From positions 1 to 64,000 of the IMG/VR virus record IMGVR_UViG_3300021137_000001: DNA of 64,000 nt. One strand, written 5' to 3'. Positions 20,484-52,701 of the stretch are shown piece by piece. Under the pieces are notes generated by a model. That model searched no databases. It worked only from the letters and a program-made list of their open reading frames with translations, and was not told where the DNA came from. Each line of letters opens with the position of its first letter. Position 1 is the first letter of the stretch. Position numbers and translations under genes: made by a program.

Positions 20484-21401
20484 ATGGCACAAACTCCAGA
20501 CAGCGTCTTAGTTAAAAGACCCTACCAATCAGAAACATTTACAGAAGAACAGCTCTTAGAATTTGCTAAGTGTGCTGACCCAATCACTGGGCCGGAATAC
20601 TTTATGAGTCATTACTTCTACATACAACATCCTACTAAAGGACGTATGTTGTATCAGCCGTTTGAATATCAAAAACGCTTAATTGAAACATATCACAATT
20701 ATAGATTCAGTATCAGTTTAATGCCACGTCAAACTGGTAAATCAACAAGTGCTGCCGGATACTTACTATGGTACGCAATGTTCGTACCCGATGCAACAAT
20801 TCTTATCGCGGCACACAAATATACAGGCTCGCAAGAAATTATGTCACGTATTCGTTACGCATATGAACTATGCCCTGACTTTATACGTGCTGGCGTAACA
20901 ACATACAACAAAGGTAATATCGATTTTGAAAATGGCTCACGTATTAACTCGGCTACAACGACAGAAAACACAGGTCGCGGTATGTCTATATCATTATTAT
21001 ATTGTGATGAGTTCGCATTTGTACGCAGTACAATCGGTCGTGAATTTTGGACTTCTATCAGTCCTACACTAGCAACAGGCGGTAAATGTATTATCACATC
21101 AACTCCTAACTCAGACGAAGATCAATTTGCTACTCTGTGGAAGGGAGCCAACAAATGCGTGGACGATTTTGGAAACGCCACTGCGTTAGGAGTTAATGGG
21201 TTTAAATCATTCCGTAGTTATTGGAGAGAACATCCAGATAGAGATGACACGTGGGCAACGGAACAACGTGCGCAATTAGGTGATGAACGCTTCCGTAGAG
21301 AGATGGATTGCTGTAACGGTGATACAATACTACAATTAGAAATTAATGATGAGCAAAAAATAGTCACAATTGGTGAATTGTTTAATATAATCGATAAATA
21401 A
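20484..21401 (+). CDS. terL: Terminase large subunit, N-terminal half (ATPase) fused to a 30-aa N-intein
   Basis: Walker A PRQTGKS, Walker B LYCDEFAF, ITSTPN; ends RREMD|CCNGDT...IIDK*. Confidence 0.92.
   Translation: MAQTPDSVLVKRPYQSETFTEEQLLEFAKCADPITGPEYFMSHYFYIQHPTKGRMLYQPFEYQKRLIETYHNYRFSISLMPRQTGKSTSAAGYLLWYAMFVPDATILIAAHKYTGSQEIMSRIRYAYELCPDFIRAGVTTYNKGNIDFENGSRINSATTTENTGRGMSISLLYCDEFAFVRSTIGREFWTSISPTLATGGKCIITSTPNSDEDQFATLWKGANKCVDDFGNATALGVNGFKSFRSYWREHPDRDDTWATEQRAQLGDERFRREMDCCNGDTILQLEINDEQKIVTIGELFNIIDK
21309..21398 (+). mobile_element. Split intein N-fragment (30 aa, atypically short)
   Basis: Begins with Cys in a block-A-like CCNGDTILQL, then KIVTIGELF, then stop. Confidence 0.85.
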
Positions 21402-22433
21402 TTGGAGAAGACCAATTTAATTGAGAAATGTATGAGTGATGCAAATTATGTAATATCGAAAATAGATAACAAAAACTATTGTGTATCTAACGGTCAGTTT
21501 ACAAAACATCTCAGAACAAATCAACTCACATATCAAGCATATTATGAAAAATATATAACAGGTACTATTAAATTATGTAGTTGTAGTAAACCATTGACCT
21601 TTTATCAAAAAAATCACACCTATGCTAGCAGTTGCGGAAACCCTGTATGTGTGGGTAAAACTATAGCTAAATCAAAACAATTATGGACAGACGAGCAGAA
21701 GCTATCGGATTCAGCAAACAAGAAAAAAGCTGCCAATGCTAAGACAGACAAACAGAAAGAGCTGCAAGTGGCTCGAGCCAGAGCAACTTTTATGCGCAAG
21801 TATGGAGTTGAATGGAGTTCTAAGTTTGCCGACCAAAAAGAAAAATCTAGAAAGACAAAGAAAGAAAAATATGGTAGCGAAACATATAATAATAGCAAGC
21901 AAACAAGCAATGCCTGGCAAGCAAAGACACTTGATGAAATTTCCAATATAGTATCTAAACGTCGTGCAACTTGTATGGATCGATTTGGGGTCGAAAATGC
22001 TTTAATGAAACCGGAAGCTAGAATAAATTCTGCTAAATCAAATAGTATAGGTCGAGCATTTGTTATGCCATCGGGTAAGGTTGTTGGGGTTCGTGGGTAC
22101 GAAGATACTGTGCTGGCCAACTTATTAAAAGAATACAGCGAATCAGAATTATTATTTGATGATAGGAAAACTATATATAGTTTACCGGTGTTTGCATATA
22201 TAAACGTAAACTTACACCTTGCAACATATTATCCGGATATCTATATTTCAAAAGAGAATAAAATCATCGAAGTAAAAAGCATGTGGTGGTGGAACGGAAA
22301 TGGTAATGAAAAATATAATTCTAGACTAATTAATAATTTACGGAAGAAAGATTCAGTAATAGAGCAAGGATACGAATACGAAGTTTGGTTGTTTAAAAAT
22401 AAAACAGAATATGAGATACTAGCATGGAAATAA
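21402..22433 (+). CDS. Free-standing PD-(D/E)xK-type homing endonuclease between the terL halves (start TTG 21402 or ATG near 21431)
   Basis: GYE...YYPDIYI...IIEVKS; KYG/RFGVEN repeats; Cys motifs. Confidence 0.7.
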   Translation: MEKTNLIEKCMSDANYVISKIDNKNYCVSNGQFTKHLRTNQLTYQAYYEKYITGTIKLCSCSKPLTFYQKNHTYASSCGNPVCVGKTIAKSKQLWTDEQKLSDSANKKKAANAKTDKQKELQVARARATFMRKYGVEWSSKFADQKEKSRKTKKEKYGSETYNNSKQTSNAWQAKTLDEISNIVSKRRATCMDRFGVENALMKPEARINSAKSNSIGRAFVMPSGKVVGVRGYEDTVLANLLKEYSESELLFDDRKTIYSLPVFAYINVNLHLATYYPDIYISKENKIIEVKSMWWWNGNGNEKYNSRLINNLRKKDSVIEQGYEYEVWLFKNKTEYEILAWK

Positions 22434-22765
22434 TGTATAAAGAAAACAAACACGGTTATAAAGTGTTAACTCCTGATGGATATAAATCCTTTGTAGGCAT
22501 TCGGTGTCTTGGCAAAAAAGAAATCCACCGGATTGAATTGGGTACTGACTATTGGATTGAGTGTACATCTAATCATAAGGTATTTGTTAGTGATACTATC
22601 AGAGTTACTGTTGATGAACTTGTAGTAGGAGATATAGTATTAACTAATAGTGGCAATCAACAAGTATCTGCTAAATTAAATTTAGGAAGAGAAGAATTAG
22701 TATACGATTTAATCGAAGTAGACGGTGGGCATCGTTATTATACAAATGGAATATTGTCGTCAAAT
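22424..22765 (+). mobile_element. Split intein C-fragment (114 aa) ending Ser-Asn, followed by Cys+1
   Basis: AAT at 22763-22765, TGT at 22766. Confidence 0.85.
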
Positions 22766-23506
22766 TGTGAATTTATCATCTGGGATGAAACACTTATTAA
22801 CCCAGGGCATTTAGTTGAAATGCAAGGTATTGACCCAATCGAACAGCAAGGACAAATACGTTGGTATAAAAAGCCAAATCCAGCATTTACATATCTCGTT
22901 GCACTTGACCCAAGTCTAGGCACAGGCGGCGACCCAGCGGCAATACAAATATTTGAACTCCCAAGTTTTATACAAGTAGGCGAGTGGCAACATAATCGCA
23001 CACCAGTACAACGTCAAATTGTTATACTAAGTGAGATTACTAAGTACCTTGCTGAAACTGTGCCAGTTAATAGCATATACTATAGCATGGAAAACAACTC
23101 TATCGGCGAAGCGGCATTAGTAACAGTAGCATCGATGGGCGAAGAAAACATTAAGGGAACATTCTTAAACGAACCACGCAAATCAAGTGGCGGAAGTTAT
23201 AGAAAGGGATTTAATACAACACAACGTTCTAAGCTATCTGCTTGCGCAAAGTTAAAAAACTTAATTGAATCTAAACGCTTAACAGTAAACAGTAAGAACT
23301 TAATCTCAGAACTAAAAACATTTGTTGCAAACGGCTCTAGCTTTGCTGCTAAACCCGGCGAAACAGATGACTTAGTAATGAGTGTAGTACTAATGGTACG
23401 CATGGCTATGCTATTGCAATCATACGATGCAAGTTTAGATAGTGCGATGCGTGATACGTTAGATGATTTCATCGAGCCTCTTCCCTGGATAATGACTACA
23501 TATTAG
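22424..23506 (+). CDS. terL: C-intein (114 aa) fused to the terminase large subunit C-terminal half (nuclease)
   Basis: Intein blocks B (CTSNH), F (VYDL) and G (YTNGILSSN|C); then CEFIIWDET, ALDPSLGTGGD, ENN and DDLVM. Confidence 0.9.
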   Translation: MEIMYKENKHGYKVLTPDGYKSFVGIRCLGKKEIHRIELGTDYWIECTSNHKVFVSDTIRVTVDELVVGDIVLTNSGNQQVSAKLNLGREELVYDLIEVDGGHRYYTNGILSSNCEFIIWDETLINPGHLVEMQGIDPIEQQGQIRWYKKPNPAFTYLVALDPSLGTGGDPAAIQIFELPSFIQVGEWQHNRTPVQRQIVILSEITKYLAETVPVNSIYYSMENNSIGEAALVTVASMGEENIKGTFLNEPRKSSGGSYRKGFNTTQRSKLSACAKLKNLIESKRLTVNSKNLISELKTFVANGSSFAAKPGETDDLVMSVVLMVRMAMLLQSYDASLDSAMRDTLDDFIEPLPWIMTTY

Positions 23507-23557
23507 ATTAGATGCCTTTCAACAGACTAGCATAAATAATACTATGAGAATAAAAAA

Positions 23558-25903
23558 ATGCGCGAAATAAACAAAATAGCTGAAGCATTGTTTGAAAAAA
23601 TCCGTGATAGATTTGATGATGTTACTTTAGGTGATGAAAACGCTAAAGCAACACAAGATCCAGCATCCGCACGTTTCTTCAACTTTGATTATACAGTAGA
23701 TGGCGCAAGCCACGGTAACATAACAATTAGCGTTATTGATGAAAATTCACTTAAAGTATACTTTAGTAAAAACATCAGTAGTGATTTAGACGATGAAGAA
23801 AAAGCAAAATGGTATGCGTTTTTACGTGAACTAAGAGAGTTTGCTCGTCGCAACTTATTAAGTTTCGACCCACGTGATATTACACGTAGTACACTAAAAC
23901 ACCGCGATTTGCAACAAGTAAGCAAATCAGACAATACATACAGTAAAGATGAAGTTGCACTTGGCGAAAGCAGAATGCACGGCACAAGTCGTAGTAGTTA
24001 CGAGCAAGATGGTGACGTAAAGATTATTGTACGTCATAGCGATCGAGTAGACCCAGAGCAACGTGGCGCACGTAGTCGTAAAATTAAAGCTCTGTTTATT
24101 GAAACAGCAGATGGCGCACGTATTAAACTACCCCACAACAACTTAAAATACGCACGTGCAATGGCACAACACATATCACAAGGTGGTGACGCTGGTGATG
24201 ATTTTGGGTGCCATATTACTAAAATAGCAGAAGAATGTGGTAAACTACGTCCGTTTAAATCAGCAATGATACGTAGAACATTTGAAGATGCTGAAACACA
24301 ATCAATGGCAGAAGCCGCATTTGAATATCACGGCTTGCTAAACAATACACTTAAAAAAATGGGTGGACGTAAAGGTTATGCTGCTTGTAAAGAAAGTTTT
24401 ATAGCAGATGATGTTTTAATGGATGAATTTGATGTTGATGCATTGCGTGAACGCTTTGTTAAACGATCATTTAATGATAGAATGGAAGACGCACTACCAC
24501 TTGTACAAAAGGCATATAATATGAAAAAATCTAATAACTTCGCGCAACAATTTGAAAGCTGGGCAGACAACGTAAGTGAAGGCACATGGGCTAAACCGGA
24601 AGGTGAAGAACAAGTTGCTGAACTTATCGACTTGTTGATGGAACCGCTAACAGTTGGTATTGATGCAACTAACGCAACTAGCGCACTATATAACTTAGTC
24701 GGTGATGACCAATTGTTTGATCGCTTAGGTGATTTAGCAGAAGAAAACCCAGAAGCTGATGCACGTGATGTGGTTATGGATTGGGTACAAGAAAACATGC
24801 CAGAAATTTATCAACAAGTTATGGCTGCAATTGGCGATGAAGATACAGCCGGTCAACAAGCAGAGCCAGAAATGGATGAAGGCGACACATATGGCGGCAC
24901 ACCGGCTGGTGGACAAGATTATACAAACGTTGAAGAAAACTACGACGATGAAGAAAATGATAGCTGCGATGCAGTACAAGCGGCAATTATTCGTCGTATC
25001 ATAAATTCACATAGTGATTTACTATCACAATACGGACCAGAAGCAATTACAAATGCATCTAGAGATGTTGCTGAATGGGTGGGTAACGTTGAAGAAATTG
25101 GTAGCAGTGATGTTAGCGGTTGGGTTAAAGAAGTTATTAACAACTTAGGCGGCACTGACGAAATTGAACTTGAACGTGACCGTGATGAACCAGAGCAAGA
25201 ATACGGTAGCGATATGCAGTTTGATCAAGACATCGACAGCCCAGACCAGTTTAATCGCGGTGGCGAAATGGATGAAGGCATAGTTGATACTGTTCGCGGT
25301 AAGAACTATAAACGTTTAGCAGATCGCAGTTTTAACAAGGCAATGAACGCACATGATGAGACTTTGAAATATGATTTTGATGACCCGTTCGGCCGCCCTC
25401 CACACGAAAAAGAATTTAGTAAACAAATGGCTAACATGCGTCAACGTGATAACAAAGCAAAATCACTTGGTATCGATGAAGCCACAGGTGCGTTAGATGC
25501 TATTATTGCTAATAACAAAGCGGCAGTTGATAATTTTATCCATCACAATGAATTAGATTATGATTTAGAAAGTGACTTACATGAATATTATTATGACAGA
25601 TTAAGTCATTCTGCACAACGTGATGCAGACGACGAAGGTGAAATTGCACAAATGTTTGCAGATGATTTGGCTGACATGGGTATGATGTCTAACGTTGACG
25701 AAGCAATTGGCGACGATTACGTAAACAAAGATGAAAAATTAAAACGTATGGGTGCGAAAGAATTAAGTCCGTTAGACAAAGCTAGAATTATGCCAAGCCA
25801 AATGAAAGCAATGTCTAAAGGCGACGACGAAGGCGACTTAACAGCATACAACAAACAATTTAATGAAGAAATCGCACAGATGCGCAGAATCGCTGGTATT
25901 TAA
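23558..25903 (+). CDS. Large acidic hypothetical virion protein
   Basis: 781-aa ORF after terL; late motif upstream; repeated xDE[GA] motifs. Confidence 0.6.
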   Translation: MREINKIAEALFEKIRDRFDDVTLGDENAKATQDPASARFFNFDYTVDGASHGNITISVIDENSLKVYFSKNISSDLDDEEKAKWYAFLRELREFARRNLLSFDPRDITRSTLKHRDLQQVSKSDNTYSKDEVALGESRMHGTSRSSYEQDGDVKIIVRHSDRVDPEQRGARSRKIKALFIETADGARIKLPHNNLKYARAMAQHISQGGDAGDDFGCHITKIAEECGKLRPFKSAMIRRTFEDAETQSMAEAAFEYHGLLNNTLKKMGGRKGYAACKESFIADDVLMDEFDVDALRERFVKRSFNDRMEDALPLVQKAYNMKKSNNFAQQFESWADNVSEGTWAKPEGEEQVAELIDLLMEPLTVGIDATNATSALYNLVGDDQLFDRLGDLAEENPEADARDVVMDWVQENMPEIYQQVMAAIGDEDTAGQQAEPEMDEGDTYGGTPAGGQDYTNVEENYDDEENDSCDAVQAAIIRRIINSHSDLLSQYGPEAITNASRDVAEWVGNVEEIGSSDVSGWVKEVINNLGGTDEIELERDRDEPEQEYGSDMQFDQDIDSPDQFNRGGEMDEGIVDTVRGKNYKRLADRSFNKAMNAHDETLKYDFDDPFGRPPHEKEFSKQMANMRQRDNKAKSLGIDEATGALDAIIANNKAAVDNFIHHNELDYDLESDLHEYYYDRLSHSAQRDADDEGEIAQMFADDLADMGMMSNVDEAIGDDYVNKDEKLKRMGAKELSPLDKARIMPSQMKAMSKGDDEGDLTAYNKQFNEEIAQMRRIAGI

Positions 25904-25923
25904 TACAAGAAATTAGTTTTACC

Positions 25924-25950
25924 AAAAGGGCACTTTTTAGTGCCTTTTTT
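25924..25950 (+). terminator. Rho-independent terminator
   Basis: AAAAGGGCACT-TTTT-AGTGCC followed by a T run. Confidence 0.75.
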
Positions 25951-25951
25951 C

Positions 25952-25980
25952 TTGACCTTACTATCAATATAACGTATTAT
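25952..25980 (+). promoter_or_regulatory. Sigma70-like promoter for ssb (late motif also present near 25995)
   Basis: TTGACC-17nt-TATTAT. Confidence 0.55.
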
Positions 25981-26063
25981 TAATGTGTAGGTGATAAATA
26001 GTATTGTAAGTAGCGGGAAGTTACCTACATTAAAGACCAACTTAAAACACAAGGAGTTATACC

Positions 26064-27077
26064 ATGGCAACATCATTAGCAGAAATCAGAGCAAAGTTAC
26101 AAGCGCAAGACACACGTAGTACAGGTAAATCATCAGGCGGCGGCGACAACGCAATCTACGCACATTGGAACATTGACGAAGGTGCAACGGCACGTATTCG
26201 TTTCTTACCAGATGCAGATCCAAAAAACACATTCTTCTGGGTTGAACGTAATATGATCAACTTAGAATTCGCTGGCGTTAAAGGTCAGACAGACAGCAAA
26301 AAAGTAGTAGTTCAAGTACCATGCGTTGAGATGTGGGGCGAAGCGTGTCCAATCTTAGCAGAAGTGCGCACATGGTTTAAAGATTCTTCATTAGAAGAAA
26401 TGGGCCGTAAGTATTGGAAAAAGAAATCATATTTGTTCCAGGGCTTTGTTCGTGAAAATCCAATGAAAGATGACAAGACCCCAGACAATCCAATTCGTCG
26501 TTTCATCATCAGTCCACAAATCTTTAACTTAGTTAAGTCAGCGTTACTTGACCCAGAGTTAGAAAACTTGCCAACTGATTATGCAGGCGGTTTAGATTTT
26601 ACTGCAACTAAAACATCTAAAGGTGGTTACGCAGACTATAGTACTAGTAAATGGTCACGTAAAGAATCTGCATTAACTGTAGACGAAGCTGAAGCAATTG
26701 AGAAACACGGTTTATATAATCTTGCAGACTTCTTGCCTAAACGTCCAACTGATGTTGATCTTAAAATCATGAAAGAAATGTTCGAAGCATCAGTTGATGG
26801 ACAACCATACGATGAAGAAAAATGGGGTGCGTATTACAAACCACGCGGTTCATTCACTTCTAATGCTCCGGCCACTAACACAGCACCGGCTGCGCAAGCA
26901 CCTGTAGCTACACCTGCTGCAACAGCAGTTGTTAGTGAGCATGTTGCTACAACAGACGTTCCATTTGAAGCAGATGATGCTCCAGAACCAACAGCGGCAG
27001 TAACAACTCCTGCTAGTGGCGGACAACGTGCTGAAGACATTTTAGCAATGATTCGTAATCGTCAAAAGACTGCGTAG
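26064..27077 (+). CDS. Single-stranded DNA-binding protein (gp32-like)
   Basis: IRFLP, PCPI-like ACPI, IISPQIF, YSTSKW; flexible acidic tail; upstream of uvsX. Confidence 0.8.
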   Translation: MATSLAEIRAKLQAQDTRSTGKSSGGGDNAIYAHWNIDEGATARIRFLPDADPKNTFFWVERNMINLEFAGVKGQTDSKKVVVQVPCVEMWGEACPILAEVRTWFKDSSLEEMGRKYWKKKSYLFQGFVRENPMKDDKTPDNPIRRFIISPQIFNLVKSALLDPELENLPTDYAGGLDFTATKTSKGGYADYSTSKWSRKESALTVDEAEAIEKHGLYNLADFLPKRPTDVDLKIMKEMFEASVDGQPYDEEKWGAYYKPRGSFTSNAPATNTAPAAQAPVATPAATAVVSEHVATTDVPFEADDAPEPTAAVTTPASGGQRAEDILAMIRNRQKTA

Positions 27078-27086
27078 GGAGTATAA

Positions 27087-27869
27087 TTGATTACGTATGT
27101 AATTGATTACCAAAACGGGAGTATGGGTCAGAGTTTGTTGGCTCATACTCTTTATAGTTGCAATCAAGTCGAGTTAGATCTAAATCTATTTTTTTCTGAT
27201 ACTGGCAATAGTCATAACATTTGTAAATTAAATAAAACACATCTACAGGCGCAGCATTATATTAATATTATTGATACTTGCAATTATACAAAGCTAGTGG
27301 AAATAGTGCCCGATAATGAATATAAGTTGCTTCGATTAAAGATGAGTTATGAAAAATGGACTGGATGTTTTCCGGAGCCAGGTAATTTTGAAAAATTTAA
27401 TTTTCGTGATCTAGGTAAAGATAATTCATATTATGAATCGTTGGCTTTAAATTATTATGGTATATTTGATGATATACCATACAATAGTGATATAGTAACA
27501 CTGTCGGCATTTATAGCCAATGATATTGATGCATATAAAACATTAATTGCACGTACATTTGGTTGGCAGTGGGATGATGCTAAAAGTACTGAATTTAACC
27601 ATTCAATGATTTATGCCAATAAAGCATATTTAGATTGGCTTAATAAAATAACCACTATTTGTACAGATATTATTAATTTCAACATTAGTCAACTTGATAA
27701 TTTATTGTTTTGGGAAAAGGCTGCAATTATAGCGTATGTTTGTTATACATTAAAGATAGATGATTTAAAGAAGTTAACCTGGAACGAAGCAGATCAATTC
27801 CTACTTAACGATACTAAATTTTTAATTACTGATTTAAAAAGGATATTAACACATGGCAAAACCATTTGA
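27087..27869 (+). CDS. AT-rich accessory hypothetical protein
   Basis: ORF with TTG start between ssb and uvsX; visibly more AT-rich than its flanks. Confidence 0.55.
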   Translation: MITYVIDYQNGSMGQSLLAHTLYSCNQVELDLNLFFSDTGNSHNICKLNKTHLQAQHYINIIDTCNYTKLVEIVPDNEYKLLRLKMSYEKWTGCFPEPGNFEKFNFRDLGKDNSYYESLALNYYGIFDDIPYNSDIVTLSAFIANDIDAYKTLIARTFGWQWDDAKSTEFNHSMIYANKAYLDWLNKITTICTDIINFNISQLDNLLFWEKAAIIAYVCYTLKIDDLKKLTWNEADQFLLNDTKFLITDLKRILTHGKTI

Positions 27870-28923
27870 TGTAAGTAAATTTAGAAAGACCTTAACTAAG
27901 TCAATTGACGGGTTAGGATTTGGATTCAACGACCCAACTGATTGGGTTAGTACAGGTAACTATGCACTTAACTATTTAATTAGTGGCGACTTTAACAAAG
28001 GTATTCCGCTAGGTAAAGTAACAGTATTTGCTGGTGAGTCTGGCGCAGGTAAATCATACATCTGTTCTGGCAATATTATTAAAAATGCACAAGATCAAGG
28101 CATCTATGTTGTTTTAATTGACAGCGAAAATGCGTTAGATGAAGCATGGCTTAAAGCACTTGGTGTTGATACAGACGACAGCAAATTGCTTAAACTAAGC
28201 ATGTGTATGATTGATGATGTAGCAAAAACAATTAGTACATTTATGGCAGACTATAAAGTATTAGCAGAAGGCGATCGCCCAAAAGTTATGTTTGTAGTTG
28301 ATTCGCTTGGTATGTTACTAACACCAACGGACGTCAATCAGTTCGAAGCAGGCGACATGAAAGGTGATATGGGTCGTAAACCTAAAGCCCTTACATCACT
28401 TGTACGTAACTGTGTAAACATGTTTGGTAACTACAACGTGGGCTTAGTGTGTACAAATCACACATACGCAAGTCAAGATATGTTTGACCCAGATGATAAA
28501 ATCAGTGGCGGCCAAGGCTTTATCTACGCATCAAGTATTGTAGTTGCTATGCGTAAATTAAAACTTAAAATTGACGAAGACGGCAACAAAGTTACTGAAG
28601 TACTTGGTATACGTGCGGCTTGTAAGATTATGAAAACACGTTATGCTAAACCATTTGAATCAGTGCAAGTACAGATCCCATATGAAACAGGTATGAGCCC
28701 GTACAGTGGACTAGTTGATTTAAGTGAGAAAAAAGGTATTTTGGCTAAAGATGGTAACAGTCTTAAGTATACCGCAGTCGATGGCACGGTTATTAAACAA
28801 TTCCGCAAAGCGTGGGAACGTAATGATAACAACTGTCTAGACAAAATTATGAAAGATCTTCAAGACAATCCTGATATGCTAAGTAAACAAGATACAGTTA
28901 AATCAGAGGAAGAAGCAGAATGA
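27853..28923 (+). CDS. uvsX: RecA-like recombinase UvsX
   Basis: Walker A AGESGAGKS, DSENALD, VVDSLG, NHTY and SGG motifs. Confidence 0.92.
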   Translation: MAKPFDVSKFRKTLTKSIDGLGFGFNDPTDWVSTGNYALNYLISGDFNKGIPLGKVTVFAGESGAGKSYICSGNIIKNAQDQGIYVVLIDSENALDEAWLKALGVDTDDSKLLKLSMCMIDDVAKTISTFMADYKVLAEGDRPKVMFVVDSLGMLLTPTDVNQFEAGDMKGDMGRKPKALTSLVRNCVNMFGNYNVGLVCTNHTYASQDMFDPDDKISGGQGFIYASSIVVAMRKLKLKIDEDGNKVTEVLGIRAACKIMKTRYAKPFESVQVQIPYETGMSPYSGLVDLSEKKGILAKDGNSLKYTAVDGTVIKQFRKAWERNDNNCLDKIMKDLQDNPDMLSKQDTVKSEEEAE

Positions 28924-29150: not shown

Positions 29151-29152
29151 AT

Positions 29153-42632: not shown

Positions 42633-42657
42633 ATGTTTTTAGTGAAGGAGAGTTAAA

Positions 42658-43140: not shown

Positions 43141-43193
43141 CTAAATATTTACATGGTGACAAAATTACCGTGCAAATTACAAAGGGACATACA

Positions 43194-43319: not shown

Positions 43320-43320
43320 A

Positions 43321-43650: not shown

Positions 43651-43651
43651 C

Positions 43652-44803: not shown

Positions 44804-45228
44804 TCTAATTTTCCTAATAATTCAAACCCGGAGATAGTTTGTTTGTATTCATCTGCTCCGCCCATATACAAATAAGTAAATCCTAATGCTTTGTATATAG
44901 CACACTCATTCTTTAAACTTTCTATTCCTAATCGCAATTTAGGATTATCATAATCCCATGCAAACTGTAAACTTTCAGCATTATTAACATCGTATTTTTT
45001 AACTAAACTAAATGCTATTAATTGACCCTGATTATGATATCCGATTATGTCAGTATTACTATCTAAATATTGTTGATTAAAAATTGGCATTACGCTACTA
45101 AACTTTTTATACTCGCAGTACTTGCGATAAATGAGATTTAATTCTGATATATCAGGGTTGCGGATATATTGCCAGTTGGTTGATGTTGTATAATTGGTTT
45201 TTGCCAGATTTATTCTTGCGTATTTCAT
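44800..45228 (-). CDS. GNAT protein resembling the C-domain of aminoacyl-tRNA-protein transferases (ATE1/Bpt-like)
   Basis: LIAFSLV...WDYDNPKLRLG...E...ALGFTYLYMG resembles the YDP...SLG...YxYLG pattern. Confidence 0.55.
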   Translation of the reverse strand: MKYARINLAKTNYTTSTNWQYIRNPDISELNLIYRKYCEYKKFSSVMPIFNQQYLDSNTDIIGYHNQGQLIAFSLVKKYDVNNAESLQFAWDYDNPKLRLGIESLKNECAIYKALGFTYLYMGGADEYKQTISGFELLGKLE

Positions 45229-45232
45229 TAAA

Positions 45233-45727
45233 TTACTTATGGCGCCACGTTACTACTTCGTCTAACTCTGATTGACTCCATGTATCATAATATCCCTTAG
45301 CACGAATTTGATCAGACGCCGCAGTTAATTTACTCAACGGAGAGATTACAAATAATCCACATTGCCCAAAGTTCATATTAACCCCTGCAATATATTCTTT
45401 TACATCTGGGTGGTCTTCTAATAGAACATAATCATTTTGCATAATGTTAGCATTCAATTCTAATGCTAACTGTTGGCAATCTTCACCAGAGATTAGTGTA
45501 TGGTCAAAGCATATAACTGCTACGTCATACTGTCCGAACATAGTTAAACTTTCGTTGACAGTTTTGGTTAAGTCTGCTATACTACTTTCGATTATAAGGA
45601 TTTTATTGTTTATGCGAGCTTGTCTTGCATACAGGCAAGGCGGCCAATTATTTAATGCAGGATTTGGTTTCTCTACAAATGACGTCAACCATTCGATTAA
45701 TTGAGTCTTTATTAAATTGAAGTTCAT
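45233..45727 (-). CDS. Hypothetical protein (DUF1415-like N-terminus)
   Basis: W...V...PPCLYARQA; first gene after the minus-strand TAAATA (45733-45738). Confidence 0.5.
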   Translation of the reverse strand: MNFNLIKTQLIEWLTSFVEKPNPALNNWPPCLYARQARINNKILIIESSIADLTKTVNESLTMFGQYDVAVICFDHTLISGEDCQQLALELNANIMQNDYVLLEDHPDVKEYIAGVNMNFGQCGLFVISPLSKLTAASDQIRAKGYYDTWSQSELDEVVTWRHK

Positions 45728-45751
45728 ACTACTATTTAAGGTAGATTTAGG

Positions 45752-45780
45752 TTGACAAAATATTATTTTGGCTGTATAAT
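45752..45780 (+). promoter_or_regulatory. Consensus early promoter
   Basis: TTGACA-17nt-TATAAT with TG extension. Confidence 0.85.
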
Positions 45781-45812
45781 GCTATACATACACTAACAAC
45801 AAGGAGCAACAA

Positions 45813-45977
45813 ATGACTAAACTTATTATTATTTTTATCTGCCTTAATTTAACTGCTTGCGGGTGGGACCAGAAGAAATGTGTAGATGGAAAGTTATACC
45901 ACAAGCCCTACGGAAATGGACCGTACCTACTCGAAAACGGTATCACTTGCCTACCTGAAGATAAGGAAACAAAATGA
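45813..45977 (+). CDS. Small lipoprotein (54 aa)
   Basis: MTK plus hydrophobic stretch and lipobox LTA|C; AAGGAG RBS; translated by hand. Confidence 0.65.
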   Translation: MTKLIIIFICLNLTACGWDQKKCVDGKLYHKPYGNGPYLLENGITCLPEDKETK

Positions 45978-46261
45978 AAAACTTAGCACAGTATATTGAA
46001 CAGAAAAATACTTGGGCAATTTTTTTTAAAAGCCCAACTTATGATGTTAATAACTTATCAGAACGTGATTGTCAAAATCTGTACGATAGTTTAGACAATG
46101 ACCTAAGCCCAGAGAACTTAACTTGTGACGGCGAACTTAGCGGAGCAAACATTCGCGGTCGCGCACGTTTATTGAACTCAGCGGCAAAAGAGTTAGTTAC
46201 GATAATTCGTGCTAACAACTACACAATCCCCTACTCCGACTTCCGCGAACTTAATTTTTAA
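45974..46261 (+). CDS. Hypothetical early protein
   Basis: LSPENLTCDGE motif; coupled to the lipoprotein gene. Confidence 0.6.
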   Translation: MKNLAQYIEQKNTWAIFFKSPTYDVNNLSERDCQNLYDSLDNDLSPENLTCDGELSGANIRGRARLLNSAAKELVTIIRANNYTIPYSDFRELNF

Positions 46262-46265
46262 TCAC

Positions 46266-46294
46266 TTGACTTTTTGGTAAAATGGCTGTATAAT
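46266..46294 (+). promoter_or_regulatory. Early promoter
   Basis: TTGACT-17nt-TATAAT with TG. Confidence 0.8.
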
Positions 46295-46326
46295 AGCACT
46301 TATACACTAAAGCAACGGAGCACAAG

Positions 46327-46758
46327 ATGACATACACATTTGATGAGAACGTAGTTAGCGACTTACACAAAGATGCACGTGGTTCACGTCCAAATGAATA
46401 CTTTTGGGAAGAATGGTATAACATCAATGATGAAGGTAAACAGTCAATATGGGATGGCTTGCTTGTGGAACTTGACGTTACTGATAAGGAAGAACAAGCT
46501 CGCGAACAATCAGCAATTGCTAGTTTTGAACGGCACATTGCTTCATTGGAATCAATTAGCAACTCACGTGAACAATCAATCAGATGGATTCTTGAAGGCT
46601 TAGAACTTACTGAATCAGACAAACTATATGGTAGTGATTACATTTGCTACAAATTGGGTCTACCATACAGTTACGCTACACAATTTGATCTAGCAAGTGT
46701 GCGCAACGACGCAGACATATATGCGGATTTAGATGCTATTGCATATGGCAACAAATAG
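46327..46758 (+). CDS. Hypothetical early protein
   Basis: SDLHKDARGSRP motif; GGAG RBS. Confidence 0.6.
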   Translation: MTYTFDENVVSDLHKDARGSRPNEYFWEEWYNINDEGKQSIWDGLLVELDVTDKEEQAREQSAIASFERHIASLESISNSREQSIRWILEGLELTESDKLYGSDYICYKLGLPYSYATQFDLASVRNDADIYADLDAIAYGNK

Positions 46759-46759
46759 G

Positions 46760-46788
46760 TTGACAGAACAGAAAATAGACTGTATAAT
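46760..46788 (+). promoter_or_regulatory. Early promoter
   Basis: TTGACA-17nt-TATAAT with TG. Confidence 0.85.
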
Positions 46789-46850
46789 AGCTACATAATA
46801 AGAAAACAGATAACTGTTTCAAAATTATAAAATTATTTAAGGAGCATTAA

Positions 46851-47873
46851 ATGACTGGTTTTGTTAAAATTAAAAGTGGTACTTACAGAAACGCTAAAGT
46901 AGAAAACGAAGTGTTTCCGCTTGTTAAACAATATACTGTTGGTGCTAAAGGTGGCTTTATTACTGTTGATGGTACAGGACAGTTTGGTAAGGATAAAGTA
47001 CGTGTGTTAGTAGATGGTGTAACAGACTTTGAGTTTGTACACGCAGACGAATATACAGGTACTGTTAGCACAGCAACAAAAACTTCAGCAGTAACGTCAA
47101 CAGATGAAGAACGTATTACGCAAATTGCAGAACGTTTTGAAATCTTAGATGACATGACTAAGGCAACATTGAATGGTGACATTCGTGCGCTGATTGTAAG
47201 TGGCCCTCCGGGTGTTGGTAAATCTTTTACAGTTGAACGTGAACTTGAACGTTCTGCACTGTTTGATCAAATTAGCGGACGTCGTGTAAAAAGTACTATT
47301 GTTAAAGGTAGTGCAACAGCTATTGGCTTGTACAAAACATTGTATGAGTTTAGTGATAGCAACTGCGTAATTGTATTTGATGACTGTGATAGCATCTTGT
47401 TTGATGAAGTGAGTTTGAACTTGCTTAAAGGTGCATTGGACAGTGGTAAAAATCGTAAGATTAGCTGGTTAGCTGAATCACGTGTATTGAAAAATGAAGG
47501 CATTCCAAATAGCTTTACATTTCACGGTAGCGTAATTTTTATTACAAACTTGAAATTTGATCAAGTACGTAGTCAAAAGATGAAAGATCACTTAGAAGCA
47601 TTGCAATCACGTTGTCATTACTTAGATTTGACACTTGATACAATGCGTGATAAGATTTTGCGTATCAAACAAATTGCCGATACTGGTGTGTTGTTTGCAG
47701 ACTACGATTTTGAACAATGCGCACAAGATGAGATTATTAACTTCTTGAACGTAAACAAAAACAAAATGCGTGAAATGAGTTTGCGTATGGCAATTAAAGT
47801 AGCAGAGCTACGTAAGAGCTTTCCGACAAAATGGCAGGCACTTGCTTCAACAACTTGTATGAAAGCAGGTTAA
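46851..47873 (+). CDS. AAA+ ATPase
   Basis: Walker A GPPGVGKS, Walker B IVFDDCD, ITN, SRC arginine finger. Confidence 0.8.
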   Translation: MTGFVKIKSGTYRNAKVENEVFPLVKQYTVGAKGGFITVDGTGQFGKDKVRVLVDGVTDFEFVHADEYTGTVSTATKTSAVTSTDEERITQIAERFEILDDMTKATLNGDIRALIVSGPPGVGKSFTVERELERSALFDQISGRRVKSTIVKGSATAIGLYKTLYEFSDSNCVIVFDDCDSILFDEVSLNLLKGALDSGKNRKISWLAESRVLKNEGIPNSFTFHGSVIFITNLKFDQVRSQKMKDHLEALQSRCHYLDLTLDTMRDKILRIKQIADTGVLFADYDFEQCAQDEIINFLNVNKNKMREMSLRMAIKVAELRKSFPTKWQALASTTCMKAG

Positions 47874-48139
47874 TGCGACATCGCAAGCGTAGAGTCTTAG
47901 AGGGTAGCTGGTTTAACTTAAACAGTGTAACCAGCCCCGCAACAGGTCGTAAGCACTATGTGGTCAGTGCTAATGCCTACAGACTATTAAAGTTAGAAGG
48001 CATGAACATAGACGATGTGCGTGATCACTTTGACCCACATCATAATAGAGGTAGTAAGCACAGTACTTCGTGGAAGTTTAGAAGCCGTGAACAAGCAGAA
48101 CAATTACTTACAATGGCAATATTAAAGTTCGGAGGATAA
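47873..48139 (+). CDS. Hypothetical protein
   Basis: TAATG coupling. Confidence 0.5.
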   Translation: MRHRKRRVLEGSWFNLNSVTSPATGRKHYVVSANAYRLLKLEGMNIDDVRDHFDPHHNRGSKHSTSWKFRSREQAEQLLTMAILKFGG

Positions 48140-48140
48140 G

Positions 48141-48515
48141 ATGGCTACTGGATACGCTCACGCAACAATTGAACGGCAGTTTCTAGCAGAAACAATACGT
48201 AAAGCAAAGTACGCGGCAAAGACAACTAGGAATCTTGCTTTCCTAGTTGACTTGGACTATGTTATTGGTTTACTAAAAGCGCAGTCCGGCAAGTGTGCGA
48301 TTACAGGTTGGGATTTAGAATTTACACGCGGCGGGACCTTCAAGGGAAGTATGAATCCTCGAGGTTGCACGATGGATAGAATTGATAACGACAAAGGTTA
48401 TATTCGAGGTAATATTCAATTGACCTGTGTGTTGCCTAATATGATTCGGGGAACAATGTCGTTGGAGTCATTTAAATCTTTGTGCAATGATGTAGTTGCA
48501 CATACAGGAAAATAA
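48141..48515 (+). CDS. HNH/endonuclease VII-like protein
   Basis: CAITG...DRIDNDKGYIRGNIQLTC. Confidence 0.65.
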   Translation: MATGYAHATIERQFLAETIRKAKYAAKTTRNLAFLVDLDYVIGLLKAQSGKCAITGWDLEFTRGGTFKGSMNPRGCTMDRIDNDKGYIRGNIQLTCVLPNMIRGTMSLESFKSLCNDVVAHTGK

Positions 48516-48516
48516 G

Positions 48517-48624
48517 ATGGACAACAACACAGCCGCACTATTATTACTTGCTGGTACAGCTTATTTGGTAGGTTGGTGCGGCTGGAGTGCTTGGTGGTTT
48601 TTGTTTGCAGTATTATTGATGTAA
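48517..48624 (+). CDS. 35-aa hydrophobic membrane peptide
   Basis: MDNNTAALLLLAGTAYLVGWCGWSAWWFLFAVLLM; translated by hand. Confidence 0.45.
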   Translation: MDNNTAALLLLAGTAYLVGWCGWSAWWFLFAVLLM

Positions 48625-48668
48625 TAGCTTTCACTGTGTCGCATGTATGCTCCTGACACAGTGACCTC

Positions 48669-48703
48669 AAAGCCCGATGTTTAATCGCATTGGGCTTTTT
48701 TTT
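48669..48703 (+). terminator. Rho-independent terminator
   Basis: AAAGCCCGATG...CATTGGGC followed by a T run. Confidence 0.75.
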
Positions 48704-48708
48704 ATCGG

Positions 48709-48737
48709 TTGCTCTCTATAACTTAATCGCGTATAAT
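48709..48737 (+). promoter_or_regulatory. Sigma70-like promoter
   Basis: TTGCTC-17nt-TATAAT; ATG follows 5 nt later. Confidence 0.6.
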
Positions 48738-48742
48738 AAACT

Positions 48743-49870
48743 ATGACCTATAAATTCATCGAAGATTTTTTAGAAATAATGGCTGGTTACGATAACAATA
48801 TCGCACCAAACATATTTCACGTTGCTAACTACACCCCAACTATTAGCCTTGCTCGTTACGACCATACAATAGTTGAGAGCATGGGCGCACATACACGTTA
48901 TGGTGGCGCACTAACTGATAAGCAAGCTGACTTGGCTGTACGCCTAGTGCTTAAATATCGTAAGCAATTTACTAAACTTGGTATTGATGTAACGCCAGCC
49001 GAGAACCCACAGTATCGCAGACCAGTGCGCATTATTAACAGAGCAAAACGTGTATGGTTAGATGATGAACGTATTGCTATGCGCTTCCCATACGACATGG
49101 CGATTATTAAAGAAGTGCAGACATACAGAAATCAAAGTCAAGGGCGCATGAAGTTTGATAGCGAAGATAAGATATGGTATCTAGCATTAACAGAATCAAA
49201 CATCTGTTGGGCAGTTGCATTTAGCGAACTATATAACTTTGAAGTCGATGAGCTTGTACAAAACTTAAACACACTAATCACAACATGCGAAGCAGAACTG
49301 TATGAGATTAAACTTGTATATGATGCGGTGCATGGCTTTAAGATTACTAACGCGGCTGATAGTTTAATTGAATACATCAATACTAACTTAGGTGGGTTTG
49401 GTCTCGACAATGCAGTTGCACTAATTGATAATGCAAGTGTGCTAGGTTATACGTATGACGAAATGATTATACACCCTGCACTATTAGATGTGTTTAATAT
49501 GCGTCGTAACATACATCTACCAACTACAGCAAGTGCCCTTACGCTTGTTTTAGACTATGCAGAGCTAACTAATCGCTACCCTGTATGTATATACGACCCA
49601 TCAATGACATCAACGGATATGGATTTAAGCAGGTTTAGTGAAAGCGAAATTGTACGCTTTAATCATAGTGGTAAAACAAAGACTTGCGATTATAACATAG
49701 ATTGTGTTAAAGTAGTATATGCAAACAAGATACCAACGACATGGGAGTATCCAGTGCCGTTACTTATATCAACTGCTGAGATGATGTTTGGTGGTAAACG
49801 GATGGAATGGATTAATCGAGCAGAGAAGATTGTTTACTATACCAATGTTAAATTGAGAGAAGCTGATTAA
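48743..49870 (+). CDS. Hypothetical protein upstream of uvsW
   Basis: 375-aa ORF. Confidence 0.65.
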   Translation: MTYKFIEDFLEIMAGYDNNIAPNIFHVANYTPTISLARYDHTIVESMGAHTRYGGALTDKQADLAVRLVLKYRKQFTKLGIDVTPAENPQYRRPVRIINRAKRVWLDDERIAMRFPYDMAIIKEVQTYRNQSQGRMKFDSEDKIWYLALTESNICWAVAFSELYNFEVDELVQNLNTLITTCEAELYEIKLVYDAVHGFKITNAADSLIEYINTNLGGFGLDNAVALIDNASVLGYTYDEMIIHPALLDVFNMRRNIHLPTTASALTLVLDYAELTNRYPVCIYDPSMTSTDMDLSRFSESEIVRFNHSGKTKTCDYNIDCVKVVYANKIPTTWEYPVPLLISTAEMMFGGKRMEWINRAEKIVYYTNVKLREAD

Positions 49871-50664
49871 TGGCAACAAAAATTTTAGTAGTCGGATGTT
49901 CGTTTTCAAATGGTCATGGGCTCAATGATCAGGACAATGGCGATTGTAATAAATCTGATCCAAAACTTTGGGTTAATCAGGTATGCAATAAAGTTTGGCC
50001 TAATTCAGACATAACTAATCTTGCGAAAACTGGAGCAAATAATAATTGGATATTCTTTGAAACTATAAGCGCATTATTATTAAATGAATATGATATTGTT
50101 TTAGTAGAATGGACGGCGATACCTAGATTCAATATTAAAGTAGGATTAGAATTGTACACCGTTGAATCAATGTTAAATTCAGAATCAATTGATATTAATA
50201 TTAATAACAATATAACTTATACCAGTAAATGGCTAAACTCATTAGGTGATAATTTACGAAAAATACATAACGATCATTGGGATATTTTAGATCTTGTCAA
50301 ATATATAAATGTCATATTGCAAATACACAAAGGAAAAACATTTTTTATCAATGGGTTGGCTCCGTGGCCAGATCAATATTTTACTAAGAAAAAAATTCAG
50401 TATCCATCTGAATTATCAAATTTTGAACAAAATATGTTTGCTATAAGTACCAGAGATGACGATGAAATATTTGCTCTTTATGAAATGGTACATAATCAAT
50501 ATCAACAATATGGAGGAGTACGTCAAGAGCATTGGTTAAATTTATATAGCTCATTGATGTCGATGCAAGTTGATTATATAAGCGATACAGATCTGCACCC
50601 AGGTTACAAAAGTCAAGATATATTTGCAGAATATTTAATATCACAACTAAGAGAAAATAATTAA
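49870..50664 (+). CDS. SGNH/GDSL hydrolase-like accessory protein
   Basis: LVVGCSFSNG at the N-terminus, DLHPG at the C-terminus; AT-rich. Confidence 0.55.
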   Translation: MATKILVVGCSFSNGHGLNDQDNGDCNKSDPKLWVNQVCNKVWPNSDITNLAKTGANNNWIFFETISALLLNEYDIVLVEWTAIPRFNIKVGLELYTVESMLNSESIDININNNITYTSKWLNSLGDNLRKIHNDHWDILDLVKYINVILQIHKGKTFFINGLAPWPDQYFTKKKIQYPSELSNFEQNMFAISTRDDDEIFALYEMVHNQYQQYGGVRQEHWLNLYSSLMSMQVDYISDTDLHPGYKSQDIFAEYLISQLRENN

Positions 50665-51680
50665 TGGCACTAGCTAGACTGATAATCAAAGATGAAGTTA
50701 ATGTAAAGATCGAAGGACTAGACTTACATGAACGCAAAGAACTCAGCAACATGTTCAAGTATGAAATTCCGGGCGCACGTTATCTACCAAGTGTACGTCT
50801 TGGTCGTTGGGATGGCAAGATTGCTTACTTTCAGTTAGGTGGTAGCACGTACACTAACTTGCTTGCTGAGATATTACCATACTTAGATGAGCGTGGGTAT
50901 AACATTGAGTTGGAAGATTTACGTGACTATAGAACACAGTTTAGTTTTGCGCAGGTAACAGAACAAACATTCGCACACAAAGTATGGCCAGCTAAACATC
51001 CGATTGCGGGCCAGCCAGTTGTGCTACGAGATTATCAAATTGAAATCATTAACAAGTTTCTTGAGAACCCACAGTGCATACAAGAAATTGCAACTGGCGC
51101 AGGTAAGACATTAATTACTGCGGCACTAAGTTATAGCTGTGAACAATACGGTCGTACTGTAGTAATCGTACCAAACAAATCACTTGTTACACAAACAGAA
51201 GCAGACTACATTAACTTGGGACTAGACGTTGGTGTTTACTTTGGTGACAGAAAAGAATATGGACGTACACATACAATATGTACATGGCAAAGTCTTAACA
51301 TTATGCTTAAGAACACTAAGTCAGCAGAAGCCGATGTTACTATAATGGAATTTTTAGAAGGTGTTGTATGCGTTATGGTCGACGAATGTTTTGATAGTGA
51401 TAGTAAGGTATTAACTCCGACTGGATATGTGGCTATTAAAAATATAAAAGCTGGTGACAAAGTAATTAACTATTCGGAAAATACTAAAGAATTTAAGATA
51501 GATACTGTAGTTAAACAACATATAAATTTAACTAATTCGTCTAGCGAAAAAATGTATGAGCTAACCTTTGATAATGGAGTATCTATCCGTGTAACTGGCA
51601 ATCATAAATTTTTAACTAATTTGGGTTGGTGCAGGGCCGACGAATTATCAGATAACCATGAAATTGTAAATAAAACATAA
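50664..51680 (+). CDS. uvsW: UvsW SF2 helicase N-terminal half fused to a 97-aa N-intein
   Basis: LRDYQ, ATGAGKT, VIVPNKSLVTQ, TWQS, VMVDE|CFDSDS...TGNH...NKT*. Confidence 0.9.
   Translation: MALARLIIKDEVNVKIEGLDLHERKELSNMFKYEIPGARYLPSVRLGRWDGKIAYFQLGGSTYTNLLAEILPYLDERGYNIELEDLRDYRTQFSFAQVTEQTFAHKVWPAKHPIAGQPVVLRDYQIEIINKFLENPQCIQEIATGAGKTLITAALSYSCEQYGRTVVIVPNKSLVTQTEADYINLGLDVGVYFGDRKEYGRTHTICTWQSLNIMLKNTKSAEADVTIMEFLEGVVCVMVDECFDSDSKVLTPTGYVAIKNIKAGDKVINYSENTKEFKIDTVVKQHINLTNSSSEKMYELTFDNGVSIRVTGNHKFLTNLGWCRADELSDNHEIVNKT
51387..51677 (+). mobile_element. Split intein N-fragment (97 aa)
   Basis: Block A CFDSDSKVLT, block B VTGNHKF. Confidence 0.88.
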
Positions 51681-51707
51681 ATACATATAACTAATGCAGA
51701 AGTCCTT

Positions 51708-52610
51708 ATGAAAATACAATACAATAAATGGATAGAATTACTCAATGACAGACTAATAGAACATAATCAATCTATTAGAGTAATCGAGTACTCTAGTGGC
51801 ACATTAACATTGTCGAGCGGTGAAACTTTACTAGATAATAAGTTTGAGAAATTTAAAAAACGAGTTATGAATAAAAAAACCACAATGTGGGTAGATAATA
51901 TGGATAACTTATTCCATGGTACAGTTACTGAAAAAGAAATTAAATCTAAATTGGCGGCAATTGGCGGGTTGTCAGTACAAGAAAAATACGGTGAAAATAT
52001 TAGATTAAATCTTAATACAGGTACCCCATGGAATAAAGGTACCAAAGGACAAAATATAGGTACAGGTACTCCCCGACCACAAGCAGTTAAAGACAAAATT
52101 AGTGAAAAAAATTCCGGCAACAGAAATGGTATGTACGGAATTAAGATGACTGAACAAGATAGACAAAAAAAATCATCATTAATGAAACAAAAAATATTAG
52201 CAGGAGAGTTTACTCCTAACAGCAATAATAGAAATACTCATTGGGACACGAAATTTAATAGTAAATCGTATAGGTCAAGTTGGGAGGCATTATATCAATA
52301 TATTAACCCTTTTGCAGAATACGAGACACTGAGGATAGAATATAATTTGCATGATAAAAGACATATTTATATTGTGGATTTTGTAGATCATGTCAATAAA
52401 CTAGTGGTAGAAGTTAAACCTAAAGAATTGTGCATTGGAGAGAAATTTGGTGCGAAAATGTCGGCACTAACTGCATGGGCCAACAATAATAACTATAAAA
52501 CACTATTAGTTAATAAAAAGTGGTTACAAGAACAAGTAGTTGATATTGATTACAGTATGTTTGATACAAAAACTGCAAAAAAAATAAAGGCGTTATATGA
52601 AACTAATTAA
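51708..52610 (+). CDS. Free-standing homing endonuclease (NUMOD3-like plus TnsA-like PD-(D/E)xK) between the uvsW halves
   Basis: PWNKG, NGMYG; YRSSWE...YIVDF...VEVKP. Confidence 0.75.
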   Translation: MKIQYNKWIELLNDRLIEHNQSIRVIEYSSGTLTLSSGETLLDNKFEKFKKRVMNKKTTMWVDNMDNLFHGTVTEKEIKSKLAAIGGLSVQEKYGENIRLNLNTGTPWNKGTKGQNIGTGTPRPQAVKDKISEKNSGNRNGMYGIKMTEQDRQKKSSLMKQKILAGEFTPNSNNRNTHWDTKFNSKSYRSSWEALYQYINPFAEYETLRIEYNLHDKRHIYIVDFVDHVNKLVVEVKPKELCIGEKFGAKMSALTAWANNNNYKTLLVNKKWLQEQVVDIDYSMFDTKTAKKIKALYETN

Positions 52611-52701
52611 CCGAACAGAAATATCTAAACCGGCCAATGTATATAATTTACATATAGAAAATGACCACAACTATATTGTCGACGGAGCAGTGGTGTCAAA
52701 T
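52597..52701 (+). mobile_element. Split intein C-fragment (35 aa) ending Ser-Asn, followed by Cys+1
   Basis: AAT at 52699-52701, TGT at 52702. Confidence 0.88.

Follow-up and report, generated by a model that had tools for sequence, protein, structure and literature searches.

Split inteins of two architectures interrupt terL and uvsW in one freshwater jumbo phage genome

In the DNA window analysed here, the first 64 kb of the 329,321-bp virus record IMGVR_UViG_3300021137_000001, the genes that encode the terminase's large subunit (terL) and the helicase UvsW (uvsW) are each broken in two by a split intein, and a free-standing putative homing-endonuclease gene (HEG) lies between the two parts. 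Both loci are organised like the "fractured genes" that Dassa et al. described in 2009 (PMC2677866), reading TerL-N/HEG1/TerL-C and UvsW-N/HEG2/UvsW-C. A first-pass annotation of the sequence had proposed two co-resident split inteins whose split sites differ. That both are genuine, and lie in the same complete genome, is supported by profile hidden Markov model (HMM) matches, Protein Data Bank (PDB) matches and the splice junctions; the annotation had left unmentioned the open reading frames (ORFs) between the halves (21402-22433 and 51708-52610), which we assign as endonuclease genes. We judge both inteins to be real and very probably functional. Indirect grounds for function are that the interrupted genes are the sole copies of essential genes in a circulating phage and that the catalytic residues are conserved. 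We propose that terL and uvsW were fractured independently, that each is restored by protein trans-splicing and that endonucleases drive their spread, a reading in which we have considerable confidence.

At the terL locus, which like the uvsW locus lies on the + strand, the TerL-N ORF (20484-21401) joins the N-extein to an N-terminal intein half (IntN). The N-extein (20484..21308, 275 aa) holds Walker A, Walker B and the C-motif, ends ...FRREMD and matches Pfam Terminase_6N (E 7e-16 over residues 79-279) and the PHROG terminase large subunit (E 6e-70); the intein site is at the end of this ATPase domain, where the Pfam match stops at residue 279, in the motif FRxE../CEF (here and below a slash within a motif marks a splice junction). 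The IntN (21309..21401 including the stop codon) is 30 aa long, starts CCNGDT with Cys1-Cys2 and carries block A only. HEG1 (21402..22433, 343 aa from TTG) follows, and the TerL-C ORF (22424-23506) then encodes the C-terminal intein half (IntC; 22424..22765, 114 aa, with block B TSNH, the block F Asp and His, and a final SSN followed by CEF) and the C-extein (22766..23506 including the stop, 246 aa, starting CEF), a nuclease domain that matches Pfam Terminase_6C and PHROG 36964 (E 9e-46). The pair of 30+114 aa first reported was reproduced by script (IntN from nt 21309; SSN/CEF at nt 22765). The IntC more likely begins at the ATG at 22433, i.e. is probably 111 aa long, as suggested by the TAATG overlap that this ATG makes with the upstream stop, by the alignment with CatC (see below), which also begins there, and by the many TerL IntC homologues that begin MYKEN. 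The TerL intein is split after block A, into 30 + 114 (or 111) aa.

The UvsW-N ORF (50664-51680) encodes a 241-aa N-extein (50664..51386), which spans UvsW_N and helicase motifs I to II and ends VMVDE, and a 97-aa IntN (51387..51680 including the stop, coding 51387-51677) that begins CFDSDS... and carries blocks A and B with TGNH. The N-extein matches Pfam ResIII, DEAD and UvsW_N and PHROG 16259 (E 4e-64). Beyond HEG2 (51708..52610, 300 aa), the UvsW-C ORF (52597-53436) encodes a 35-aa IntC (52597..52701), with blocks F and G and a His at -11, ending VSN before CHM, and a 244-aa C-extein (52702..53436 including the stop) that starts with the CH of the DExH box and matches Pfam Helicase_C and PHROG 9690 (E 3e-56). 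The intein site is inside helicase motif II (the DExH box), and the split is canonical, between blocks B and F, where contiguous alleles in relatives (L121 and L126) join both parts. Here too the reported 97+35 aa were recovered by script (IntN from nt 51387; VSN/CHM at nt 52701). All six ORFs of the two loci are intact and overlap or lie no more than 27 nt apart.

Several lines of evidence identify the interrupting sequences as inteins. Cys1 directly follows the N-extein in both (TerL ...REMD/CCNGDT, UvsW ...VDE/CFDSDS), and both inteins end S-N/C (SSN, VSN) and keep a block B TxNH (TSNH in TerL, TGNH in UvsW), as had been noted. On the genome, PF14890 (Intein_splicing) matches the UvsW intein (E 2e-10; 38.4 bits, above the cut-off), the TerL intein (E 4e-6) and nothing else, and a scan that combined PF14890 with a custom intein HMM found no further inteins beyond these two. 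TIGR01443 (intein_Cterm) scores above its curated cut-off for the IntC of both TerL and UvsW, and TIGR01445 does so for the UvsW IntN (40.9 bits). The TerL IntC aligns over 113 residues (query residues 4-116) with chain B of PDB 6DSL (CatC, a consensus atypical TerL intein; E 7.8e-12), and in a PDB sequence search the UvsW IntN matches DnaB, gp41-1 and BIL structures (E 1e-7 to 5e-4).

The pattern of conservation bears on whether these inteins splice. The terminal Asn and Cys+1 are invariant in 57 TerL and 121 UvsW homologues, and across the same sets, whose members are otherwise 40-90% identical, little or no variation is seen at C1, the block B Thr and His, the block-F His, Asn and Cys+1. 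In block B of 56 TerL homologues, H51 is invariant and T48 is conserved in at least 90%; the TerL IntN homologues of relatives, 29-50 aa long, have Cys1 in 27/27 distinct sequences. Docking alone would not require such invariance, which counts against the idea that the intein halves no longer splice and act only as dimerisation domains, keeping the two protein parts joined without a covalent bond, as happens with fragmented NrdA in phage Aeh1. That a gene broken by a mobile endonuclease can give such an assembly has a precedent (PMC3045599), and the missing penultimate His could be read in its favour; but an unspliced UvsW intein would disrupt motif II, given its site inside the DExH box, and in vitro splicing is established for inteins related to that of TerL (PMC11766414). 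We regard docking without splicing as very improbable. Active trans-splicing of both proteins is what we infer from these sequences.

The allele states of homologous loci show that the insertions are precise and in frame, and these junctions are the strongest evidence that the inteins are no chance resemblance. We compared the 80 closest terL C-extein loci in IMG/VR and the 80 closest uvsW loci. For terL, 77 of the 80 are uninterrupted, with N- and C-extein fused and the junction reading ...REMD-CEF..., and one of the remaining three is the source phage itself. The exact 15-mer of the joined exteins (...DERFRREMD+CEFIIW...) runs uninterrupted through 31 intein-free relatives, whose terL loci read DERFRREMDCEFIIW, the predicted ligation product of the source exteins. 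For uvsW, 66 of the 80 are uninterrupted and read VDE-V/A-H across the site (VMVDE-V-HMAK), and intein-bearing alleles all read VDE/...N/CH. Among these loci (L064-L143) the intein-free uvsW genes have a DEVH, rarely a DEAH, box and every intein-bearing allele has Cys at +1, so that spliced UvsW would carry DECH. At 88-95% aa identity, the closest uvsW exteins have no intein, a sign that it was gained or lost recently.

Homologous loci show every stage of the pathway that we propose. Beside empty sites there are contiguous cis mini-inteins at the same positions (UvsW in L121 and L126/127; TerL in P0020), split alleles with an endonuclease gene, and split alleles in which the endonuclease gene is decayed or absent and the spacer measures 0-61 nt (L007, L010, L020 and L074). 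The two inteins also occur in different combinations: a 260-kb relative (~74% complete) has the TerL intein and an intein-free uvsW (L004/L114), and in another relative the TerL intein is split while that of UvsW is contiguous (L029/L121), from which we conclude that the two were acquired independently. Both families are well populated, with 59 clusters for TerL-C plus IntC, at least 222 for UvsW-N plus IntN and at least 210 metagenomic clusters for UvsW-C plus IntC.

Stop codons and inserted ORFs can resemble pseudogenes, and the record is a metagenome assembly; one might thus suspect decaying or dead genes, or an assembly artefact. We find this scarcely credible. The genome has direct terminal repeats, is rated 100% complete and holds terL and uvsW in single copy, a search for second copies having found none. 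The intactness of the six ORFs also argues against decay, as does the recurrence of the layout in dozens of diverged relatives and in the cultured phage SEA1. The identical arrangement is present in contigs of several sequencing runs: in two of four metagenome runs compared with both loci a single contig spans each locus whole, although these two runs may be the record's own source, and partial contigs from the two further runs agree with the arrangement of both loci. No joined form removing an intein or an endonuclease gene was seen in the contigs of these four runs, which thus give no evidence of a co-circulating, near-identical empty allele. Contigs with the terL locus occur in many freshwater runs dated 2012-2025.

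The first-pass annotation had singled out the absence of a penultimate His in both inteins. A His at this position (G:6) commonly assists class 1 inteins but does not strictly define them. The absence itself is confirmed, with Ser at this position in both; as a special oddity shared by the two it does not stand, for it is clade-wide in both families and documented for phage inteins and Ssp DnaE. The penultimate residue of the TerL IntC is Ser in 56 of 57 homologues and His in one clade member (SHN); that of the UvsW IntC (n=121) is Ser in 88, Ala in 28, Lys in four, Thr in one and His in none. Characterised relatives have the His (SH(N) in CatC, AHN in SEA1). A His at -11 (block F:13) is present in 56/57 TerL and 121/121 UvsW sequences, and block F:4 is an invariant Asp in the TerL IntC and an invariant Asn in the UvsW IntC. 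Phage class-1 inteins frequently lack the penultimate His, the block-F His can take over its role, and putting the penultimate His back may even make splicing slower (PMC5050341); among split inteins, that of Ssp DnaE is a textbook example "without the penultimate histidine" (titles of Chen 2000 and Sun 2005, cited in PMC4031507). The conservation of the block-F His suggests that it may likewise compensate in the two inteins described here. Inactivity or degeneration as the meaning of the missing His we reject: Ser or Ala is kept clade-wide and the other catalytic residues are invariant. The absence is real but ordinary.

It had further been proposed that the architecture itself should prevent TerL/UvsW chimeras, mismatched pairs either missing or duplicating the central region. 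For one combination this holds: TerL IntN (block A) with UvsW IntC (blocks F and G) would have no core from which to build a HINT fold. The other, overlapping combination of UvsW IntN with TerL IntC is conceivable in principle. When a single intein is cut at differing sites, pieces of it that overlap do cross-splice (Pinto 2020, PMC7090010), most cross-talk involving short atypical pieces (PMC7090010), and inteins of the same architecture coexist within one terL of a relative (L020). A multimer comparison of cognate and non-cognate partners, which had been suggested as a check and was run for TerL IntN, gave the cognate TerL IntC only. In this four-chain co-fold, TerL IntC, UvsW IntN and UvsW IntC were offered together with TerL IntN as the scored partner. 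TerL IntN docked on TerL IntC alone (ipSAE 0.74 against 0.00 for the best control), and the control in which TerL IntC was replaced and both UvsW halves were kept scored 0.00; of solved complexes 51/78 reach that mark, of mismatched pairs 2/108. Runs agreed in at least 84% of contacts, the partner model confidence (pLDDT) was at least 71, and in the modelled interface Cys1 lies close to block B and to the SSNC at the C-terminus. With the TerL and UvsW inteins only ~32% identical over aligned positions, cross-reaction, and with it the formation of chimeras, is unlikely.

Should the different split sites themselves be regarded as the device for orthogonality, whether because they were selected for it or because they suffice for it? 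The missing core in the TerL IntN-UvsW IntC combination and the co-fold preference of TerL IntN for its own IntC would fit. Cross-splicing of overlapping fragments speaks against it, as do the same-architecture inteins that coexist in relatives, three in one terL (L020/L021) and several per genome in G003. Each split site moreover coincides with an endonuclease insertion, with no selection for orthogonality needed, and the two inteins were acquired independently (L004/L114). We consider the device unlikely. Where three short-N split inteins share one terL (L020/L021), specificity must come from sequence, since three split inteins of one architecture in a single protein would need mutual orthogonality. 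The suggestion of a natural orthogonal pair in one genome therefore survives in part: the two inteins are co-resident and likely orthogonal, by sequence rather than by architecture.

We return to the proposal of two independently fractured genes and to the putative endonucleases that would have broken them. HEG1, more likely 333 aa long from an ATG at 21432, combines a Cys-rich N-terminal part with three KYGxE repeats and, at the C-terminus, a PD...E-x-K nuclease in which P268, D269, E280 and K282 are invariant in 12 homologues. It matches Pfam DUF7487 (E 3e-31) and PHROG 3339 'homing endonuclease' (E 8e-6), and its model (pLDDT 77) gives weak Foldseek matches to PD-(D/E)xK nucleases (PA endonuclease and RecE; prob ~0.9, E 3e-3). 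Relatives either have the gene at this place, have it in decayed form or lack it. HEG2 has an N-terminal domain, a NUMOD3-like linker and a C-terminal PD-(D/E)xK nuclease (D224...E235-x-K237; D224 and E235 invariant, K237 at least 90% conserved), matches PHROG 22417 (E 6e-43) and PHROG 15427 'endonuclease' (E 8e-23), and is modelled at pLDDT 89.6; a VIA-align comparison of residues 156-299 gives TnsA at Z 8.6, Vsr at Z 6.0 and I-Bth0305I at Z 5.4. The HEG2 family is matched by 850 representative clusters, and homologues stand at this place in SEA1 as well as in loci from IMG/VR. HEG1 and HEG2 belong to different endonuclease families, as BLASTP between them finds no significant similarity. A PDB sequence search returned nothing useful for either, and NCBIfam gave no match.

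We propose the following origin from the allele states. A mini-intein would first have entered a conserved motif of each essential gene (FRxE../CEF in terL, DExH in uvsW), and a free-standing PD-(D/E)xK homing-endonuclease gene would then have landed within the coding region of the intein itself: in uvsW at the canonical site of the endonuclease domain, giving 97 + 35 aa, and in terL just after block A, giving 30 + ~111-114 aa. The split positions would be explained by where each endonuclease gene inserted. Within each locus the three ORFs run in one direction and overlap or are closely packed; after translation the cognate halves would associate into one HINT fold, and class-1 trans-splicing would proceed through the Cys1 N-S shift, trans-thioesterification to Cys+1 and Asn cyclisation, the last assisted by the invariant block-F His (-11) with no penultimate His. 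The predicted products are a 521-aa TerL and a 485-aa UvsW with a DECH box. The endonucleases would spread the entire cassette to co-infecting relatives whose alleles have no intein. Cross-reaction would be avoided mainly through diverged sequences, the mismatch in split sites being a by-product of where the endonuclease gene landed.

Some observations weigh against this proposal or limit it. Strong charge complementarity is described for the halves of DnaE and gp41-1. It is not evident in either half-pair here (net charges -4/-3 and -1/-1). The co-fold pass may reflect memory of 6DSL, and the job differs from the tool's calibration set, its score covering TerL IntN only. Promoter and terminator scans gave counts within shuffled expectation, and co-transcription is therefore suggested by gene packing only. 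No RNA run was identified among the runs that hold the locus; all those listed are DNA. The endonuclease assignments draw on motifs and moderate fold scores, of which only TnsA reaches Z 8.6, while Foldseek on both models gives weak matches (E > 1e-3), and the predicted homing draws its support from the patchiness of the cassette among close relatives.

The TerL intein belongs with the atypically split terminase inteins. Dassa et al. described, among their fractured genes, a terminase split intein "fractured at an unusual point", whose 122-residue C part lacked only motif N1 (PMC2677866); it was later named GOS-TerL and stands beside AceL-TerL and Cat-TerL, all of which splice in vitro (PMC11766414). 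They measure 37 + 115 aa (GOS-TerL), 25 + 104 aa (AceL-TerL) and 30 + 104 aa (the engineered consensus Cat-TerL, PDB 6DSL), within an atypical TerL range of ~25-37 aa for IntN and ~104-122 aa for IntC (PMC2677866, PMC11766414). The TerL intein of the source phage shares their host, a block-A-only IntN, a long IntC with blocks B, F and G, a Cys+1 followed by Glu, and sequence homology to CatC; the original GOS locus also had an endonuclease gene between the halves (PMC2677866). It differs in its penultimate Ser (SSN, as in 56/57 clade members) where CatC has His, and in its Cys1 where GOS-TerL has Ser1 (PMC11766414). By its sequence it falls into a branch of these inteins marked by a penultimate Ser.

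In the cultured, RB49-like coliphage Escherichia phage kaaroe (Krischvirus, MN850574.1; L145:757-3868) a TerL intein is likewise split atypically, has a long IntC and goes with an endonuclease of the HEG2 family, but it sits at the Walker B site (IDE/C) instead of FRxE/CEF and ends SHN/C. The short IntN and the endonuclease form one in-frame fusion, a "hypothetical protein" of 583 aa (the locus genes are kaaroe_25 and kaaroe_24), and the downstream "terminase large subunit" starts with the long IntC; the intein is not annotated.

The UvsW intein resembles those of the other fractured genes of Dassa et al. (gp41-1, NrdJ-1, IMPDH-1 and others), in which the gene halves share a strand, carry split-intein halves where the gene is broken and enclose the ORF of a free-standing endonuclease. 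Their canonical splits have an IntN of 88-105 aa and an IntC of 33-54 aa, which the 97 + 35 aa of UvsW fit, and their hosts are phage DNA-metabolism genes, as here, though UvsW is not among the eight host types listed (PMC2677866). The endonucleases of the source phage show the classical D...E-x-K signature, not GIY-YIG, and are tied to the "Vsr-like" family of Dassa et al. by fold only (Vsr Z 6.0, I-Bth0305I Z 5.4). Salmonella phage SEA1 (Gelderlandvirus, OQ927978.1; L144:2429-5158) has the same DE/CH site with homologous IntN and IntC and a homologous endonuclease between them, PHROGs 16259, 22417 and 9690 covering the three parts. The SEA1 IntC ends AHN/CH and keeps the penultimate His, whereas the freshwater clade has Ser, Ala, Lys or Thr; its locus is annotated uvsW_1 / hypothetical protein / uvsW_2, and the SEA1 annotation names three helicase fragments and a hypothetical protein but no intein. 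No paper in the literature searched links UvsW to a split intein, and this intein appears to be an undescribed family of the canonical type. In having no penultimate His, both inteins resemble Ssp/Npu DnaE and certain mycobacteriophage class-1 inteins, which belong to other hosts and other families, are natural and active without a His at G:6, and in which a block-F His is proposed to stand in (PMC5050341; titles of Chen 2000 and Sun 2005 in PMC4031507).

The TerL of this phage group is an intein hot spot. In one relative (IMGVR_UViG_3300020198_000018, L020:107-5098; the same in L021) terL is in four pieces with three split inteins, in each of which the N part is short (~32-39 aa) and the C part long, at Walker A (RQSGK/C...SHN/T), Walker B (LLY/C...TKN/C) and FRxE/CEF (...SSN/C); Vsr-like endonuclease genes occupy the first two gaps and the third gap is 0 nt. 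Two metagenomic TerL fragments add a cis intein at the FRxE/CEF site, ending SSN/C, downstream of a Walker-B IntC (P0020), and several contiguous inteins in one TerL, one of them inside Walker A (P0064). The related jumbo phage G003 (IMGVR_UViG_3300044644_001125, 327 kb) has Hint matches at no fewer than five separate loci, of which one looks split, its halves ~1.8 kb apart (257798, 259881), and the others are contiguous in ORFs of 862-1056 aa. In some relatives (L029:310-1050 and L036:469-1269) another TerL-N-like ORF, diverged and at 34-37% identity, sits right upstream of the broken terL; this paralogue is absent from the source phage genome.

The source is a freshwater jumbo phage distantly related to the PA5oct/Atu_ph07/GAP32 group. 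Megablast of both loci against 50,697 phage records found no match, and relatives are detectable at the protein level only (45-52% identity). Between the two fractured genes, at window positions 26064-28923, lie genes for a gp32-like single-stranded DNA-binding protein (PHROG 1192, E 2e-66) and a UvsX-like recombinase (PHROG 97, E 5e-69), a T4-type recombination module that supports the UvsW assignment. The window holds no tRNA genes; GC content is ~37%.

These loci leave current understanding unchanged, since fractured genes, atypical TerL inteins, His-less inteins and orthogonal sets of split inteins are all established. For protein engineering they offer a candidate UvsW split-intein family (97 + 35 aa, Cys1/Cys+1) and a Ser-penultimate branch of atypical TerL inteins. 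A more speculative and rather doubtful extension is that the freshwater jumbo-phage clade maintains sets of orthogonal split inteins, with up to three short-N inteins in terL, one in uvsW and others, and that Ser or Ala together with the invariant block-F His is a tuned catalytic variant, not drift. If so, the two inteins would form a ready-made, co-evolved orthogonal pair with distinct Asn-cyclisation chemistry, and a possible role would be the timing of TerL and UvsW maturation during infection. For phage biology, the genome provides a complete-genome case in which two essential genes depend on predicted trans-splicing.

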